From Macrostomum hystrix (taxonomy: Eukaryota; Animalia; Platyhelminthes), in the NCBI GenBank assembly GCA_950097015.1, contig CATNEN010000008.1, forward strand, positions 3,906,001 to 3,970,000: 64,000 bases of DNA, given 5' to 3'. Positions 18,506 through 40,854 of this stretch are shown one piece after another. The notes under the pieces were generated by a model. It saw nothing but the letters and a program-made list of their open reading frames with translations. It did not search any database and had not been told where the DNA came from. The position numbers and the translations under genes were made by a program. The first letter of the stretch is position 1; each line of letters begins with the position of its first letter.

Positions 18506-25062
<6,557 letters not shown>

Positions 25063-26363: not shown

Positions 26364-29300
26364 TTACTTCGCTCCATCGTCAGCGTCTGACAGCGACGGC
26401 GTGGATATCGACATTGACGAGTCGTCATCATCATCACCATTGAAAGCTGACTCCTCAGCCTCCTGAATCTCCAGGCCGACAGCGTGGGCCCGAAATTGCA
26501 CCCGAGACTCGAGGCAGACGCCCCGGGCGGCCGACCGGCAGCTGTCGAGGCATCGCCGAGCGGACCGCTTGTCGCCCTGGCTGGCGCGCAATCGGGCCAA
26601 CTCCAGCCAGGCCCAGGCGGTCACGTGACGATCGCGCACTTTGCCAAGCCGGCCCTCTGTCACCTGCAGCAGGCACTGCTCCGCCTGTGTTTCTCGCTTC
26701 AATTCGGCCATGCAGGCGCCCTTCAACAGCAGCACCAAGGCCAGATCGTCGGCAGTTGTCGAGTCGGCAGCATCGGCGCCCGCAGCATCAACTAAGCGAT
26801 CGATTTCGTCTGAGGCGGCCTGAACGTCGGCCAAATGGCCGGCCAGGGATTCTGGATCTCGGCCAACTGCCGGCAGGCCGTTCCAAGCGTAGACCAACTC
26901 AAGGCCTGGCAGGATTAGCCTGACCCGGGGGTGTCTAGTTTGATTTTCGGCATTATTTCCTGCGCCATCTACTGTTGGATTCTGAGATTCTGTTGCATTT
27001 TCAGCATCGCATGCAGTCGAGGCTGCTGACAGTTTGCGCACGAAGCGTGCAGCCCTCAGCGCGGCCAATCGTTCAACAGGCAAATTGGGCACGCCGCCAC
27101 CGCAGCACAGAGTGTCGGAGACTTCCTTCATTAGCCGTGCCACTTCCGGGTCGTCAACTGCGCCGCTCTGATAAATAAAAGCCGCGCGCTGATAGAGAAC
27201 AGTGGCCCTACTCCAGCGGGTCTGGCCGGACAGCTCCAGGGCGCAGCAGGCAGCCTCGCGCCACCGGCCAGCGTAGGCCATGGCCCACATCAGCTCCCAG
27301 CGACACAGCTGGCGCAGCTGCGGCCACTCAGCCTGAACTGAGAGGCTGCGCTCGAACGACTCGGCGGCCTGGCGGGCGCGACCGCTCAGCAGGTGGTGTC
27401 GGCCCTGCATGCATGGGCGGTGAATAATAATAATATTTGCAGGAGGGCTGCGGGCTACGAGACATCATTTGGGGACAGTTGACCCGCAGACAGCGAGGAG
27501 GCAATTCTGTCTCCTGAGCACACGCTCACACAGGTGTGTGCATCGGCTCAAAGAGTCGATTCAAAGAGACCAGAAGGTGTGATGCAGCTAGTCAATTCAA
27601 AGAGACCAGAAGGTGTGATGCAGCTAGTCGATTCAAAGAGACCAGAAGGTGTGATGCAGCTAGTCGATTCAAAGAGACCAGAAGGTGTGATGCAGCTAGT
27701 CGATTCAAAGAGACCAGAAGGTGTGATGCAGCTAGTCAATTCAAAGAGACCAGAAGGTGTGATGCAGCTAGTCGATTCAAAGAGACCAGAAGGTGTGATG
27801 CAGCTAGTCGATTCAAAGAGACCAGAAGGTGTGATGCAGCTAGTCGATTCAAAGAGACCAGAAGGTGTGATGCAGCTAGTCAATTCAAAGAGACCAGAAG
27901 GTGTGATGCAGCTAGTCGATTCAAAGAGACCAGAAGGTGTGATGCAGCTAGTCGATTCAAAGAGACCAGAAGGTGTGATGCAGCTAGTCGATTCAAAGAG
28001 ACCAGAAGGTGTGATGCAGCTAGTCGATTCAAAGAGACCAGAAGGTGTGATGCAGCTAGTCGATTCAAAGAGACCAGAAGGTGTGATGCAGCTAGTCGAT
28101 TCAAAGAGACCAGAAGGTGTGATGCAGCTAGTCGATTCAAAGAGACCAGAAGGTGTGATGCAGCTAGTCGATTCAAAGAGACCAGAAGGTGTGATGCAGC
28201 TAGTCGATTCAAAGAGACCAGAAGGTGTGATGCAGCTAGTCGATTCAAAGAGACCAGAAGGTGTGATGCAGCTAGTCGATTCAAAGAGACCAGAAGGTGT
28301 GATGCAGCTAGTCGATTCAAAGAGACCAGAAGGTGTGATGCAGCTAGTCGATTCAAAGAGACCAGAAGGTGTGATGCAGCTAGTCGATTAAAAGAGATCG
28401 AAAATCAGAGGTCTGACCAGCTCAAAAGATCACCTCAAAGTAGAGAAACAGAGCTCCGTCAGGATACCGCTGTAGGCAGGGCTGGAGCAGTCTGTCAACA
28501 GCTTGGAGATCCACAGAGCCCAGCACGTGCGTAAACGAGGTGTGATAGGCCAGTAGCAGGACTCGAACCAGCGGGGCGCGCAGGCTGCCATCCATGCTGG
28601 CCGCGGTGCGGAGCTGGCGGAGGCCGCGTCTCCGGTTGCCGCTGAAGCCAACGAACTGCAGCAGACGGAGCAGGGCCGTTGGGAGCAGGCTCAGCAGCAG
28701 ATTGAAAGCGCCGTCGCCCAGTCTGTTACGAAGAGGCAAGCGTAGGTGTAAGGCAGGTAGGCAAGTGGACTTATAGCGGACTCGCGGGTACACACCTGGC
28801 TCCGCTCTCAAAGTGCATGCGCAGCTCCGGGCAGCCCCAGGCCCGCTTGCGCAGGAGGCGCCAGCACAGCCGGTAGGCCCGATAGCAGTCGCGTATTTTC
28901 AGGCCGCCTCGAACGAAGCCCATGAGGCTCTCGTCCTGGGCGAAGGTGAGTACAGCCTTCTCTAATAGCAGCTCGGCGTAGCACAGCTCGGCGTGACACT
29001 GCTCGTCGGTGAAGTCGCCTGGCTTCAGCAGGAGCGACGCCGCCGCAGCCAGGCCGTGACGCGGTCGACGGTGGCGCTGGCAGACACGCAGGGCTCGCTT
29101 GGTTGCGTCAACGGCTCGATGGATGTCGGCCTGCTCCAGGGTCATGGAGGCCTGCATGTAGCAGATTGTGGAGCAGCTCAGGCTGTGGTACATGGATGAC
29201 TCCGCTCTGTTGGATGGGATTATCGTTGTGGCTCAGCGTTAGTTTTGCGTTTTACGGGCTACTCGCAGGAGGCCAAGACAACGGGTCGTACCATAAAGCT

Positions 29301-30110
29301 CTCCCAAGATTGGGGTTGACAAATGACTAAGTATGAGCTTAGTGATACGCAAAATTTATAGAACAGAATTGATAGAACAGGCACATTGTCTATCTATATA
29401 TTGTGAGGCGGTTCTCTCGTTAATGTGCTTACGTAAGCACAAATCCTTAAAAGTCTTCAAGCTGAAGCAGATGGGCCTACATAGTTTGACAAATTCAAGC
29501 ATTTCTGTCGTTATTTTATTTTTATAGATACAATGTTATATAAAAGTTGAGTGGCAGAGCGTTTGCCTCTCGCACCAAGGTCCCCGAGCTCGATTCCACG
29601 GCGCGGCCACATTTATTTGGGGCGCAGCCGCGGAGAGAAGGCTTGGGGGCTTGTCGTGCAATTTACACCACTGAGGGCCAACCTTCAAGGCACAGTGAAG
29701 TGTACACTGCCTGACGATGAGAAAGTCAGGGCAGATGTACACACCTGTGTGAGCGTGTGCCTGCGTACAGTATCTACAGGTGTGTGTGGTCTCAGGAGTC
29801 AGCTCAGGAGTTAGCAATGTACCATTAGCCCTCCTGAAATTATTATTATTAATATTACGATCTATAAACGTATTCTTAAATAAGCCACCTATGCAATTCA
29901 ATAAGCGAGTAGATTAAAGGCTTAAAAAGCATAAATCAGTCTCACTGTGGCTCCATCATTGCGCGCGCAGTCTCAAACTGGTTGCCTAGAAACATGTCCA
30001 GCGCCTTCTGGGCCTCGCCAATTGATTCTAGCAGCTTGGCCTGGGGCAGTAGTTCTCCTTGCGGAGTACCAATTTCCTCTTCTAGATCATCAGACACTAG
30101 ATACTGGTTG
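26364..30110 (-). CDS. TTC39: Tetratricopeptide repeat protein 39 family (TTC39/IML2-like)
   Basis: Exons (-): 30110-29946, 29206-28796, 28722-28434, 27404-26364; a possible first mini-exon at 30940-30924 (MDQQL) is uncertain. Motifs ALDMFLGNQF, SSMYHSL, HAELCYAELLLEKAVLTFAQDESLMGFVRGGLKIR, GAFNLLLSLLP..LLRLLQFVGFSGNR, QLRQLCRWELMW, RWSRATVLYQRAAF. Confidence 0.9.
27553..28389. repeat. 36-bp highly homogeneous minisatellite (about 23 copies), TTC39 intron
   Basis: Unit gtcgattcaaagagaccagaaggtgtgatgcagcta. Confidence 0.97.
29545..29800 (+). mobile_element. SINE family B copy in a TTC39 intron
   Basis: Head GAGTGGCAGAGCG...GAGCTCGATTCC plus the family B body, 3'-truncated. Confidence 0.75.
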
Positions 30111-32551: not shown

Positions 32552-33021
32552 ATGATGCAACAAGCTGCTCTGATTGCTACCTGTCTCTGTAGCTTTGCCG
32601 TCCTGCTGCAGGTGAGTGGGCCTTTATTTGTTTAAATTAACCTAAACTTTGGACTTTCAAATAAAACAACTGTGCTCACCTGCAGCAGGCCCAGGGCAGA
32701 CGGCCGGAGCACGTCACAGCCAAGATTGAGTCCCACCTTGAGAACCGGCTCAAGCCCTGCTTCTATTACGGTCGCAATTGTCCGCCTGGCCTTGGCAACT
32801 ATGAGTCTATGGAGCACGACCTGCCAATCATGCAGGCTGGCCTCATAGCTTCTGGCATCCCAATGCCCTCCAGGTGCAACTGCGACCATTCGAGCGAGCG
32901 CTGCGTCCGACAGTGCTACTACTCTGTGACCAAGGCGATGGTGATGAAGTCCGCGGTGCCAGAAGAAGAAGACGACGGTGAGGGCGAGGGAGAAGACGAG
33001 AATGAGGACACTCGGCGATGA
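32552..33021 (+). CDS. Small secreted protein (about 131 aa) with six cysteines in the mature region and an acidic tail
   Basis: Exon 1 32552-32611 (MMQQAALIATCLCSFAVLLQ, donor gtgagt); phase-0 intron; exon 2 starts at 32686 or 32689 (NAGNAG acceptor): QAQG-RRPEHVTAKIESHLENRLKPCFYYGRNC...RCNCDHSSERCVRQCYYSV...PEEEDDGEGEGEDENEDTRR*. TATA-like TATATAT at 32462. Confidence 0.75.
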
Positions 33022-35440: not shown

Positions 35441-36568
35441 ATGCGTACCGGAAGCATTGCCGTCGCTCTGCTGGTTCTCCTCTGCTCGTCTGTGCTGTTG
35501 GTGAGTTGACTAGTCGACTATGTGTTATTGCGGACTCGGGTGAGGATAATCGACTCAATAGTTTAACAGTCGGTTTGAGAGTTTGACGCTTTAGTCGTAG
35601 CAATTTTAAGAGTAAATCCGTTCTGTTCTGAAAAAAATATCGACGTCAACTCAAGGAATCCGTAGGAGGTAAATAAGGACGACTTAACTTCATGAATGAA
35701 AAAGATATATTTTTTCTTTTTGGTCACGTAGGTCGACGCAAGGAGCCTGCGCCTAAAGCGCGAGGACGACGAGGACAACAGATACGACGATAACGACAAC
35801 AATGACGAGGGCGACGACGAAGAGGGCAACGAGGATGAGGACGACAACAACGACGATGATGATGAAGAGGGCAACGAGGATGAAGATGACAACAACGACG
35901 ATGATGATGAAGAGGGCAACGAGGATGAGGATGACAACAACGACGATGATGATGAAGAGGGCAATGAGGACGAGGACGACAACAACGACGATGATGACGA
36001 AGAGGGCAACGAGGATGAGGATGACAACAACGACGATGATGATGAAGAGGGCAACGAGGATGAGGACGACAACAACGACGATGATGATGAAGAGGGCAAT
36101 GAGGACGAGGATGACAACAACGACGATGATGACGAAGAGGGCAACGAGGATGAGGATGACAACAACGACGATGATGACGAAGAGGGCAACGAGGATGAGG
36201 ATGACAACAACGACGATGATGACGAAGAGGGCAACGAGGATGAGGACGACAACAACGACGATGATGATGAAGAGGGCAATGAGGACGAGGACGACAACAA
36301 CGACGACGATGACGAAGAGGGCAATGAAGACGAGGATGACAACAACGACGATGATGATGAAGAGGGCAACGAAGATGAGGACGACAACAACGACGATGAT
36401 GACGAAGAGGGCAACGAGGATGAGGACGACAACAACGACGATGATGATGAAGAGGGCAATGAGGACGAGGACGACAACAACGACGATGATGATGAAGAGG
36501 GCAACGAGGGTGAGGATGACAACAACGACGAAGATGACAAGCGCCGTCGCAGGAAGCGTCACTTCTAA
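35441..36568 (+). CDS. Secreted polyanionic repeat protein (298 aa; 16 x EEGNEDEDDNNDDDD)
   Basis: Exon 1 35441-35500 (MRTGSIAVALLVLLCSSVLL, donor gtgagt); exon 2 35732-36568: VDARSLRLKR-EDDEDNRYDD...(45-bp unit x16)...KRRRRKRHF*. This frame is absent from the ORF track because its ATG lies in exon 1. TATAAATA at 35341. Confidence 0.85.
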
Positions 36569-38176
36569 GCTGGGGGAATGTTTAGAATGTCTGCTGATTT
36601 AGAAAAGACACTCCTTCCCATTTATGTGCTGAATTTACTATTGTGCCACTACTCTTAACGCGATACAAACAGTAGTATGAGAACGGCAGAAAATATCGAT
36701 CTCTGTTGATTCGCATCGCTGCTGCCTGTGGTTATTTAACACCGATCAAGAGGCTCGATGATAAAATAAATCAGCATGACGCTGTAGCTAGATCTAACTC
36801 GAGAATGCATCAAAATTTTAGTCTGTCTTCGTTTTTTTGCTTAAAAATTCAGCTGGAACAAATTTATTGAATTCACAAAAACTAGCTCATAGCTATAGCG
36901 TGATCATCATAATCAAGTGATCGCAGGCTGCATGAAAATCAATCAAAATACTACGAGCTATTTTAATGAAGCAAGTATCAGGAGTCGACTGTGTTGAATG
37001 GACGATGTACTATCAATGCGTGATAACGTATTTATTGTACATTTATTCGAACTTCAAGTCACACATGCGGTTAACGAGGGCTCTCAGGTTGATGTCGACA
37101 GTTGCATCGTTAGTTACCCTTGGAGTAGGGAAGAAATATTAATTCGTATTCCAAGAAAGTTAAAATATCCCTGACGCTCAATGGATAGAGAATTAAACAT
37201 TTTACTCTAATATCCGACAATATTTAGAATTTCATACTAAGTAAAAGGAACAGAAAAGTGCAGCGTCAAGTGTTGGGAACGGATCCCTTCGACAAATTTA
37301 TTCAGAGATCAGAAAAACATCATCAATCTCACTCAGTTTCATGACTTTGTGCCTCTGCTTAAGAGTTACAAGTCTGAATAAAACGGCTGTCAGAAAACTG
37401 AATTTAAATGCTAAAGCTCGAAAGAAAAACACTCATGAGGTGATACCGGCCCAACTATGTCTATACTCGTATGCATGCTTCTTACCTTTCGTATAAAGAG
37501 TTTTTGCTTTCACATAAACTTTCCACGCATTGGCTTACGTTTTTATTTATTCTTCTCAAAATACCATTCAATTTTGTGATTCTTTAAATAGTGATTGATT
37601 TCTCAGTTATATCATCCGTAAAACCATTTAAACGAACCGTTATTGGATTTTAACAATATTTGACCCAGGAAATTTCCCCTTTATCACCGCACTAATCGTT
37701 GCACCATGCCCTATTTATCAAATTTCGTTAGCAACGCTTGAACTACAAAACTTTTCTGGCGCCTCTAGCTCAGGAGAGCAGTCCTTATTCCAGTCTCCAG
37801 TTTTTATTGGAGACTGGAGACTGGAGACTGGGATCAGCTTGCTCAGTGCTGATCGGAACGGCGCGGCGAACGAGTGGAATCGTTTAAAAACTCGAGTAGG
37901 ACATTGCAGCCATTTTCAGTGCAGCTTCCGATCATCATCGTTTCACTGCGCCAAATTAATGAGGCTTTGTGAGCCCTCCCCATTCTGTAGATTGCAGCAA
38001 TATCCCATCGCGCCGGATTTCCACCATTCCGATAGAATTTTTAAACGACAAGACGACTATAATTGCTTTTAATGGTAGTGAAAATTTCGTATAAATTCGA
38101 AAACTTTTCAACGACTAGAAATGCGCCTTTTAATTTTCTTCTTTTCACTTGCGAAGCTAACAGGCTGGTATCAAAC

Positions 38177-40034
38177 ATGCGCCTCTTGCTGGTTGCAGTT
38201 GGAATCGTGCTTTGCATCTCGCTGATGCACACACAGGTAAGTCATCGTTTTTCTGTGCTATCTCAATCTGTCCAAAATAAAAAGCTTCATAGGAAAATAT
38301 TTATTAACGTTTCAGTCGGAAGGTAGAGCAATTAAGCGAGGATACGGTAGTATCTCCATGGAATTCGACAAAAAGGATGATGACTCCGGATATGAGGATG
38401 AAGATAACTCAGGCGACAACAACGATGAAGACGACATTTTTGACAGGAGGAAGAAGGAAGATGACGAGGACAATGAGGACGAGGAGAACGAGGATGATGA
38501 CGAGAACTACGACCGCAAGAAGAGGGAGGACGATGAGGAAGATGATGACGAGGAGAACGAGGATGATGACGAGAACTACGACCGCAAGAAGAGGGAGGAC
38601 GATGAGGAGGATGGTGATGACGAGGAGAACGAGGACGACGACGAGAACTACGACCGCAAGAAGAGGGAGGACGATGAGGAAGATGATGACGAGGAGAACG
38701 AGGATGATGACGAGAACTACGACCGCAAGAAGAGGGAGGACGATGAGGAGGATGGTGATGACGAGGAGAACGAGGACGACGACGAGAACTACGACCGCAA
38801 GAAGAGGGAGGACGATGAGGAGGATGGTGATGACGAGGAGAACGAGGACGACGACGAGAACTACGACCGCAAGAAGAGGGAGGACGATGAAGATGATGAG
38901 GACGAGGAGAACGAGGATGACGACGAGAACTACGACCGCAAAAAGAGGAGGGAGGACGATGAGGAAGATGATGATGAAGAGAACGAGGACGACGACGAGA
39001 ACTACGACCGCAAGAAGAGGCAGGATGATGAGGAAGATGATGACGAGGAGAACGAGGACGACGACGAGAACTACGACCGCAAGAAGAGGGAGGACGATGA
39101 AGATGATGATGACGAGGAGAACGAGGATGATGACGAGAACTACGACCGCAAGAAGAGGGAGGATGATGAGGAAGATGATGACGAGGAGAACGAGGACGAC
39201 GACGAGAACTACGACCGCAAGAAGAGGGAGGACGATGAAGATGATGAGGACGAGGAGAACGAGGATGACGACGAGAACTACGACCGCAAAAAGAGGAGGG
39301 AGGACGATGAGGAAGATGATGATGAGGAGAACGAGGACGACGACGAGAACTACGACCGCAAGAAGAGGGAGGACGATGAAGAGGATGATGACGAGGAGAA
39401 CGAGGACGACGACGAGAACTACGACCGCAAGAAGAGGGAGGATGATGAGGAAGATGATGACGAGGAGAACGAGGACGACGACGAGAACTACGACCGCAAG
39501 AAGAGGGAGGACGATGAAGAGGATGAGGACGAGGAGAACGAGGATGACGACGAGAACTACGACCGCAAGAAGAGGGAGGACGATGAAGAGGATGAGGACG
39601 AGGAGAACGAGGATGACGACGAGAACTACGACCGCAAGAAGAGGGAGGACGATGAGGAAGATGATGATGAAGAGAACGAGGACGACGACGAGAACTACGA
39701 CCGCAAGAAGAGGGAGGACGATGAAGATGATGAGGACGAGGAGAACGAGGACGACGACGAGAACTACGACCGCAAGAAGAGGGAGGATGATGAAGATGAT
39801 GATGACGAGGAGAACGAGGATGACGACGAGAACTACGACCGCAAGAAGAGGGAGGATGATGAGGAAGATGATGACGAGGAGAACGAGGACGACGACGAGA
39901 ACTACGACCGCAAGAAGAGGGAGGACGATGAAGAGGATGATGACGAGGAGAACGAGGATGATGACGAGAACTACGACCGCAAGAAGAGGGAGGACGATGA
40001 TGATGATGAGGATGCTGAAGAGAGAAGTCGCTAA
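38177..40034 (+). CDS. Secreted prohormone-like polyprotein (592 aa) with 22 acidic units each ending ENYD-RKKR
   Basis: Exon 1 38177-38236 (MRLLLVAVGIVLCISLMHTQ, donor gtaagt); exon 2 from 38316 (tttcag/TCG): SEG-RAIKR-GYGSISMEFDKK..., in frame with the 558-aa ORF 38358-40034. Codon variation among the repeats is largely synonymous or D/E-conservative. TATAAAT at 38090. Confidence 0.9.
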
Positions 40035-40854
40035 CTTGTCTACTAAAAAGGTAGACATGTTCTCTGCTGAGAGCACTCTAATGAACAAATCTGTTTAGTA
40101 GGTTGCGATTGAGAATGAACCTTTTGGCGGCTGGAAGCATGTTTTGAAAACATTTAATAAATTCATAATGCGGCTTTGCAATTTTTTCACAGTATTGTTT
40201 GCCTCTTAGCAACTTTAAGAAATATACTTAACACCTGAATTTCATCAAGCAGCAGTTTAACAAGTCTTGCAACATTATCTTTGGTTCATGGCTAGTTTCC
40301 ACTTATTTGCAATAGTTCAAGTGATTTTTTAAGACATCCAGTTGGTTTTTGTAGTCGCCACGAGCTTGTGGAGCGTTGGGGGCCAGTTCCAATTTAGTTT
40401 TACGGCCTCTGCACATGGCGTTGGAATGCAGCAAGCTGAGCTTGTTTGCTGCGCGAATGAAATGGGATTAGGCTATAGAATGCGCTACCAACTAAGGGGC
40501 CAGAAGCAGCGATTAAGTGAGTTTTACACTGAGGAGCAACAAACGATATGGTTGAGTAAAATACGGACGCACCCTGAGTTTGCGTATCTCCACTTGCGTC
40601 TGACAGCTATCCCGAATTGGGATGCAGTGCCGAGCGCAGTTTCATGGAAAGTGCCCCTCTGCTGCAATGATGCATCATCAACAGAACAAATTGCAGCGAA
40701 CTAATTCTGACTGTGTGGCAAAACGAAGAAGACAGATATGTTAGGGTTCTGATAACATGTTTGCAAAAATGCCGGCACTAGTTATTGATTTCCTATACGT
40801 ATCCTCAACGTATCCCCTAGTTAGTGATGCTACTCGGTACTAATTCATACAAGT

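Follow-up and report, generated by a model that had tools for sequence, protein, structure and literature searches.

A two-exon Macrostomum gene encoding a probable multi-copy precursor of small polyanionic peptides

Introduction

Precursors that are cut by Kex2, furin or the prohormone convertases and that hold many copies of one peptide, such as those of yeast alpha-factor, honeybee apidaecin, insect tachykinin and the FMRFamide-type peptides, begin with a signal peptide and a pro-piece and continue with tandem copies bounded by basic cleavage sites. Asp/Glu stretches in known precursors of this kind are spacers that are discarded. Here we describe gene C, which has the same layout and lies at positions 38177–40034 of a 64,000-nucleotide (nt) stretch of DNA from the flatworm Macrostomum hystrix (GenBank assembly GCA_950097015.1, contig CATNEN010000008.1, positions 3,906,001 to 3,970,000 of the forward strand), hereafter called the window. 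Gene C is an expressed two-exon Macrostomum gene that is kept in Macrostomum lignano, and it probably encodes a multi-copy precursor from which convertases would release small polyanionic peptides acting by charge. Two further genes, named A and B here, stand upstream of it.

Other secreted products share single features with this gene. The polysialoglycoprotein (PSGP) of salmonid eggs is a secretory-granule protein of the cortical alveolus, built of tandem short polyanionic units and cut by a protease into these units around exocytosis. Granins are acidic, disordered secreted proteins with many dibasic and multibasic sites and sulfated tyrosines, and they drive granule condensation. The nematode polyprotein allergens/antigens (NPA), for instance ABA-1, consist of tandem units with R-X-K/R-R sites between them, and they are cut into these units in the secretory pathway. 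The ovine surfactant-associated anionic peptides, which are Asp homopolymers, are small secreted molecules of almost pure acid.

Structure and expression of gene C

All features of gene C are on the plus strand. The coding part of exon 1 (38177–38236; 60 nt, phase 0) encodes a 20-amino-acid (aa) signal peptide, MRLLLVAVGIVLCISLMHTQ, whose n-region is basic (Arg at position 2), whose hydrophobic core spans 14 residues and which has small residues ahead of the exon end. A GT..AG intron of 79 nt follows (38237–38315), with the donor CAG/GTAAGT at 38236/38237 and the acceptor TTTCAG/ at 38315/38316, and exon 2 is then read in phase 0 from 38316 to a TAA at 40032–40034. It encodes in turn the short pro-piece SEGRAIKR (38316–38339), which has a dibasic KR site at its end; a non-repetitive acidic leader, GYGSISMEFDKK...DDIFD, ending in RRKK (38340–38456); an array of 22 units, each of 19–20 aa with 15–16 acidic residues plus RKKR and with an extra R after two of them (38457–39989); and, by reading of the sequence, a C-terminal tail, EDDDDDEDAEERSR, which together with the stop codon occupies 39990–40034. 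The 5' untranslated region (UTR) covers at least 38148–38176, this minimum being set by RNA (the contig of run X1 begins at 38148), and holds no ATG before 38177. The 3' UTR (40035–40185) contains AATAAA at 40156–40161. About 86 nt 5' of the ATG a TATA-box context, TTTCGTATAAATTCGA, can be read at 38086–38102.

An initial annotation, made from the letters of the window, had proposed that a 60-nt signal exon splices in frame to the repeat-bearing exon, and RNA data bear this out. In each of X1, X2 and X3, which are RNA-type runs of one study (P1), one contig crosses the 38236/38316 junction exactly, with 0 mismatches and a word depth of about 860–1020. These contigs cover neither the 79-nt intron, inside which depth is zero, nor the DNA upstream of 38148, and they therefore derive from RNA. 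At the other end of the gene, all sampled words of 39985–40185 (last unit, stop codon and 3' UTR) are present in runs X1, X3 and X4 of study P1, and a fraction of 0.90 in X9. The strand of the gene is fixed by the orientation of the GT..AG intron, and the signal peptide starts at the transcript's first AUG.

An open frame alone would prove nothing at this place, since the window is full of tandem arrays (45 Tandem Repeats Finder rows with a score of at least 150, very dense across it) and four frames of the gene C array are open, namely the acidic frame and three others. What makes gene C a gene is its splicing, together with the M. lignano orthologues and the pattern of variation by codon position described below. 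Also considered were a hydrophobic antisense open reading frame (ORF) and the two remaining plus-strand frames that are open; all were rejected on intron orientation, first AUG and codon-position pattern. Exact look-up of the gene C ORF that begins at an internal Met gave no record.

The gene C product has 592 aa, with 36% Asp, 27% Glu, 17% Lys plus Arg and 24 Tyr; its isoelectric point (pI) is about 4.05, and 376 acidic and 101 basic residues are counted among 572. Units ending in NYDRKKR number exactly 22, as the initial annotation had stated, with 17 of 23 aa and five of 24 aa, the greater length of the latter being explained by an additional Gly codon or by an Arg codon at their start. Tandem Repeats Finder describes the array as 21.3 copies of a 69-nt period with 92% matches.

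Selection on the acidic reading frame

The 22 units differ from one another in a way that depends strongly on codon position. Of the 13 sites that vary, 11 fall at the third codon position and not one at the second (binomial p = 2e-4), and third positions account for 58 of the 60 differences from the unit consensus. Where a third-position change alters the amino acid, it is always a swap between Asp and Glu; the two first-position changes, found in one unit each, are E to Q and D to N. Both kinds of indel between units are whole codons (GGT and AGG). Furthermore, the final 13 residues of each unit, NEDDDENYDRKKR, are invariant, and the DNA changes within them are synonymous only. Because 58/60 unit differences fall at third positions and indels comprise whole codons, the acidic frame of gene C is under selection, and the earlier argument for selection on the protein instead of a neutral satellite holds.

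The same data bear on the view that the array is a neutral minisatellite which happens to be open within a transcribed region and yields an acidic protein without function. Such a view could appeal to the tandem arrays that crowd the window and to the four open frames of the array. However, it does not accommodate the codon-position pattern of the unit differences, the in-phase splice to a signal-peptide exon or the recurrence of the same architecture in the M. lignano orthologues, and we consider this reading already close to refuted.

Orthologues in Macrostomum lignano

Two loci of M. lignano (L001 and L002, assembly GCA_002269645.1) were reached through homologues of gene A, and each contains one gene C orthologue, 4–8 kb downstream of the closest gene A homologue. 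Six loci with more distant M. lignano gene A paralogues have no acidic-repeat neighbour, so the adjacency of A and C is one of orthologous synteny and not a recurring functional pair. The two orthologues occupy about 18882–20374 of NIVC01004841.1 and about 231103–232757 of NIVC01000665.1. For one of them the annotated product has 466 aa, just what exon 1 plus exon 2 are predicted to give. The other (L001 18806–20460) has a public annotation of 163 aa, yet an intact two-exon frame of 521 aa is present there, and the short annotation looks like an error caused by the repeat.

The orthologues resemble gene C from one end to the other. Exon 1 again has 60 nt and encodes a signal peptide, MRLLLVAMGIALCIAQMHRE, identical to that of gene C at 14 of 20 residues; the introns have 92 and 89 nt (79 nt in gene C); and the pro-piece is SDARALKR (SEGRAIKR in gene C). 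The leaders can be aligned between the species, with GY, SxM, FD and [IL]F.RRKK conserved. A 17-mer, TTTCGCTATAAATTCGA, found 5' of both orthologues is nearly the same as the TATA context of gene C; written out as TTTCG(C)TATAAATTCGA, the M. lignano context is near-identical to it. The flanks of this 17-mer gave no alignment between gene C and the orthologues, and between the window and M. lignano it is only coding parts that align, at 70–77%.

The units themselves have changed in composition. Those of M. lignano are Glu-rich and follow the pattern QDDEEDEEEE[YN]EEEEEEE[NS]YD, after which comes RRKKR, KRKKR or RKKR. Asp and Glu make up 15% and 40% of the units in M. lignano versus 36% and 27% in gene C. 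Kept in both species are a length of 19–24 aa, a start with [EQ]DDEED, an N or Y in the middle and the end [NS]YD. Sites of the form R-X-K/R-R number 22 in gene C and 14 and 16 in the two orthologues, and every variant of the unit-end basic cluster seen in either species (RKKR, RRKKR, KRKKR and RRKR) retains this form. Charge, spacing and putative cut sites are conserved between the species; the exact acidic sequence is not.

The predicted M. lignano products have 19–24 aa with 15–21 acidic residues and masses of 2.45–2.94 kDa, and nearly every unit opens with Gln just after the cut site. N-terminal Gln is the residue that is turned into pyroglutamate in processed secreted peptides. The M. lignano products may possibly bear a pyroglutamate N-terminus.

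Two further features are seen in M. lignano. Amidation-type ends, GGLF-G-RRKK and QEFF-G-RRKK, flank the array (L002 15686–17026, L001 18955–20460). In addition, the orthologues carry an odd hydrophobic/acidic unit (QDNRVEQEEVEEIIEEIEEEVEEIREEE...) that does not occur in gene C of the window.

These two Gly-plus-basic ends are the kind of finding expected if the acidic units were spacers and the non-repetitive leader or tail peptides were the bioactive part, as in neuropeptide precursors. Nevertheless, neither Gly is present in gene C of the window, where the leader ends DDIFD-RRKK and no such tail exists; the best conserved and amplified part is the array and not its flanks; and no parallel would exist for 22 spacers serving one or two peptides. 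We regard this explanation as very improbable.

Processing and predicted products

The probable course of events in the precursor reading can be laid out as follows. The signal peptide would be removed, with the cut probably after CIS/CIA or at the exon end. A protease of the furin/prohormone-convertase type would then cut after RAIKR, after RRKK and after each of the 22 RKKR clusters, and an enzyme of the carboxypeptidase E/D type would trim the basic residues. About 22 peptides would result, each of 19–20 aa and about 2.35 kDa, with 15–16 acidic and no basic residues, and the one conserved tyrosine per unit may be sulfated. Such peptides would act through charge density, without a specific fold or receptor motif, and would bind or compete for cations or Lys/Arg-rich proteins, either in the secretory granule or once released. 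From secretion to charge-based action these steps are inferred from motifs.

The R-X-K/R-R pattern fits all 22 unit-end sites of gene C. The calculated unit peptides range from 2.33 to 2.41 kDa, and ten of them are identical copies of the commonest form, EDDEEDDDEENEDDDENYD. Gly precedes RKKR in 0/22 units, and Gln is the first residue in 1/22. The initial annotation had envisaged peptides of 19–20 aa with about 16 acidic residues and no amidation Gly, which is what the calculation returns. The comparison with M. lignano strengthens the precursor reading, because all basic-cluster variants keep R-X-K/R-R while the Asp/Glu content of the units has changed. Signal peptide, spaced sites, tyrosine and charge density are conserved, and this is the pattern expected of a protein that is cut into charge-acting units.

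Extreme acidity (pI about 4) combined with regular basic clusters can also be read in another way, namely as a granin-like polyampholyte matrix protein that stays uncleaved or is cleaved in part, and that packs cationic cargo or swells on release. Blocks of –16 and +4 charge would alternate along such a chain and could lead to condensation in the Golgi or granule, so that gene C would contribute a component of rhabdite, mucus, cement or prostate granules. Neighbouring gene B, whose product is a 260-aa polyanion without internal sites, fits this picture, and granins and other acidic granule proteins likewise hold many dibasic sites. Against a matrix role stand the R residues at P1 and P4, which are strictly kept by all variants of the unit-end cluster in both species, and Gln at P1' in M. 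lignano; Pfam, too, finds no granin domain. On balance, a matrix protein seems an unlikely reading.

Several points nevertheless weigh against the precursor reading. The signal peptide was called by inspection, and cleavage is deduced from motifs only. The tyrosine context (acidic at –2 to –6 and at +1, with Asn at –1 and RKKR at +2 to +5) appears not ideal for TPST. As gene B exemplifies, this family can evidently also make use of a long polyanion that is not cleaved. Protein searches with pieces of gene C and with M. lignano exon 2 returned no relatives outside Macrostomum, a weak result because of composition filters, and no localisation of gene C was found in the adhesion papers, the seminal-fluid in situ hybridisation (ISH) screen or the single-cell literature.

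The blank outcome of the direct protein searches is probably due to these filters. No similarity to flatworm or other neuropeptide families was detected by Pfam or by the protein searches, the latter being weakened in the same way, and a literature search for the unit motif strings gave no match. As far as these comparisons reach, gene C is outside any described family.

A possible role in release from adhesion

Macrostomum attaches and releases itself by a duo-gland system, for which Wunderer 2019 predicts "a small negatively charged molecule" as the releasing factor (PMC6410801); the account that the initial annotation gave of this published model was thus correct. Heparin and the pentasaccharide fondaparinux block attachment in Macrostomum, and Lys, Arg, KR peptide or MgCl2 block detachment (PMC6410801). 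In the adhesion model of 2022, a kringle membrane protein of the anchor cell binds the Lys-rich cohesive protein (PMC9229212). The releasing factor was still called unidentified in papers of 2021 and 2022.

As a special case of the precursor reading, the gene C peptides could be this releasing factor. They would be the vesicle cargo of the releasing glands and, once discharged, would bind to ap1, the cohesive protein, at its Lys/Arg-rich repeats and displace it from the anchor-cell surface, leading to detachment. The published prediction and the opposite effects of heparin or fondaparinux and of Lys, Arg, KR peptide or MgCl2 are consistent with such a role, as is a predicted peptide of 2.35 kDa with 16 negative charges that is conserved in M. 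lignano. However, the releasing vesicles of Macrostomum and Minona contain periodic acid-Schiff (PAS)-positive polysaccharide and have a low nitrogen/protein density (PMC6410801 and another paper of the same group), which points to carbohydrate and leans against a peptide cargo; the predicted gene C peptide has no sugar sites. Nitrogen makes up 12.5% of the peptide by mass, half of the 26.5% of the ap1 KR peptide, and low-nitrogen vesicles therefore do not strictly exclude a peptide. Localisation of gene C to the tail plate or the releasing glands was not found in the literature searched, and the RNA runs appear to come from whole animals. The abundant-looking transcript also contrasts with the roughly 130 releasing gland cells per worm, although this argument is weak, depth being a poor measure. 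Taken together, the candidacy of gene C is a match in charge and size only, and we think it decidedly unlikely that its peptides are the releasing factor.

The function of gene C could be settled quickly, as ISH, RNA interference, transgenesis and attachment assays are routine in M. lignano. Expression in the releasing glands would supply the missing component of the attachment-release model and, for reversible glues, a peptide that is simple and can be synthesised. If the peptides were indeed the releasing factor, a genetically encoded "de-adhesive" would be known for the first time, and gene C would be the first precursor with a pure peptide polyanion as its product. Expression elsewhere would still be informative on how a gland handles or uses extreme charge, which might, for instance, act as counter-ion to a cationic cargo, drive swelling or bind cations.

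Neighbouring genes

Genes A, B and C are on one strand, and each has a 60-nt phase-0 signal exon, a TATA box 80–90 nt 5' of the ATG and a downstream poly(A) signal. Their promoters do not align with one another except at the TATA box. Pfam assigned no family to any of the three (for gene C, none at E <= 1), and no tRNA or Rfam family was found at 28–42 kb of the window.

Gene A (32552–33021, plus strand; signal exon 32552–32611, second exon 32686–33021) encodes a small secreted protein with six Cys and an acidic tail ending in TRR, and its closest M. lignano homologue is 74% identical. The family, found here only in Macrostomum, has the Cys pattern C-x6-C ... C-x-C ... C-x3-C and includes single-domain and double-domain members. 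AlphaFold yields a confident model of a three-helix bundle (pLDDT 80), for which no fold match was obtained in AFDB Swiss-Prot or PDB and which does not point to a particular tissue. Several gene A paralogues finish in Gly-plus-basic motifs such as QRFPGKRS.

Gene B (35441–36568, plus strand) consists of the signal exon 35441–35500 and an exon at 35732–36568 that encodes VDARSLRLKR, 16 copies of EEGNEDEDDNNDDDD and KRRRRKR-HF. The polyanion of about 260 aa lies between RLKR and KRRRRKR and contains no internal cut sites; VDARSLRLKR occupies the same place as the pro-piece SEGRAIKR of gene C. Among the gene B units, 30 of 31 differences are at third codon positions. No counterpart of gene B was detected by tblastx in the two M. 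lignano loci, a search limited by low-complexity masking.

Upstream of gene A, a short element (29632–29763) matches, on the opposite strand and in a translated search, two copies in each M. lignano locus (L001 16476–16607 and 17902–18016; L002 13208–13339 and 14629–14746), where they lie between genes A and C. It is probably a dispersed repeat. The minus strand of 28400–30100, which immediately precedes the cluster, shows exons of a conserved-looking gene, possibly TTC39-like as judged by eye.

Comparison with known systems

In the Atlas feature comparison, hits were taken as leads at weak scores, the best being polysialoglycoprotein (0.74), with apidaecin and tachykinin precursors at 0.62–0.67. 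The multi-copy convertase precursors share the general layout with gene C and have no sequence homology to it. Moreover, what they release is a cationic or amidated peptide and their acidic stretches are spacers, whereas the gene C unit is composed almost only of Asp and Glu and has no amidation Gly.

PSGP differs from gene C in the source of its charge, which comes from polysialic acid on Ser/Thr, as well as in its 13-aa unit and its lack of RXKR; it is a vertebrate protein and not homologous. The gene C product, like granins, is acidic and disordered and has multiple basic sites, but granins lack a regular tandem organisation and their acidity is far lower, and gene C contains no granin domain or motif. 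NPA units, unlike those of gene C, fold into lipid-binding domains of about 130 aa and are not polyanions. The ovine anionic peptides, again unlike those of gene C, are 5–7 residues long, are regarded as side products of zymogen activation and do not come from a tandem array in a gene. In size and charge, the heparin and fondaparinux of the adhesion assays are comparable as small, dense polyanions (1.7–2.4 kDa) that block ap1-mediated cohesion; these are sulfated sugars added from outside, whereas the gene C peptides are a predicted gene product.

Multi-copy convertase precursors are well known as a class, and we know of none in which the amplified product is a nearly pure Asp/Glu peptide. It is this amplification of a unit that is itself almost pure Asp and Glu which sets gene C apart from the systems compared.

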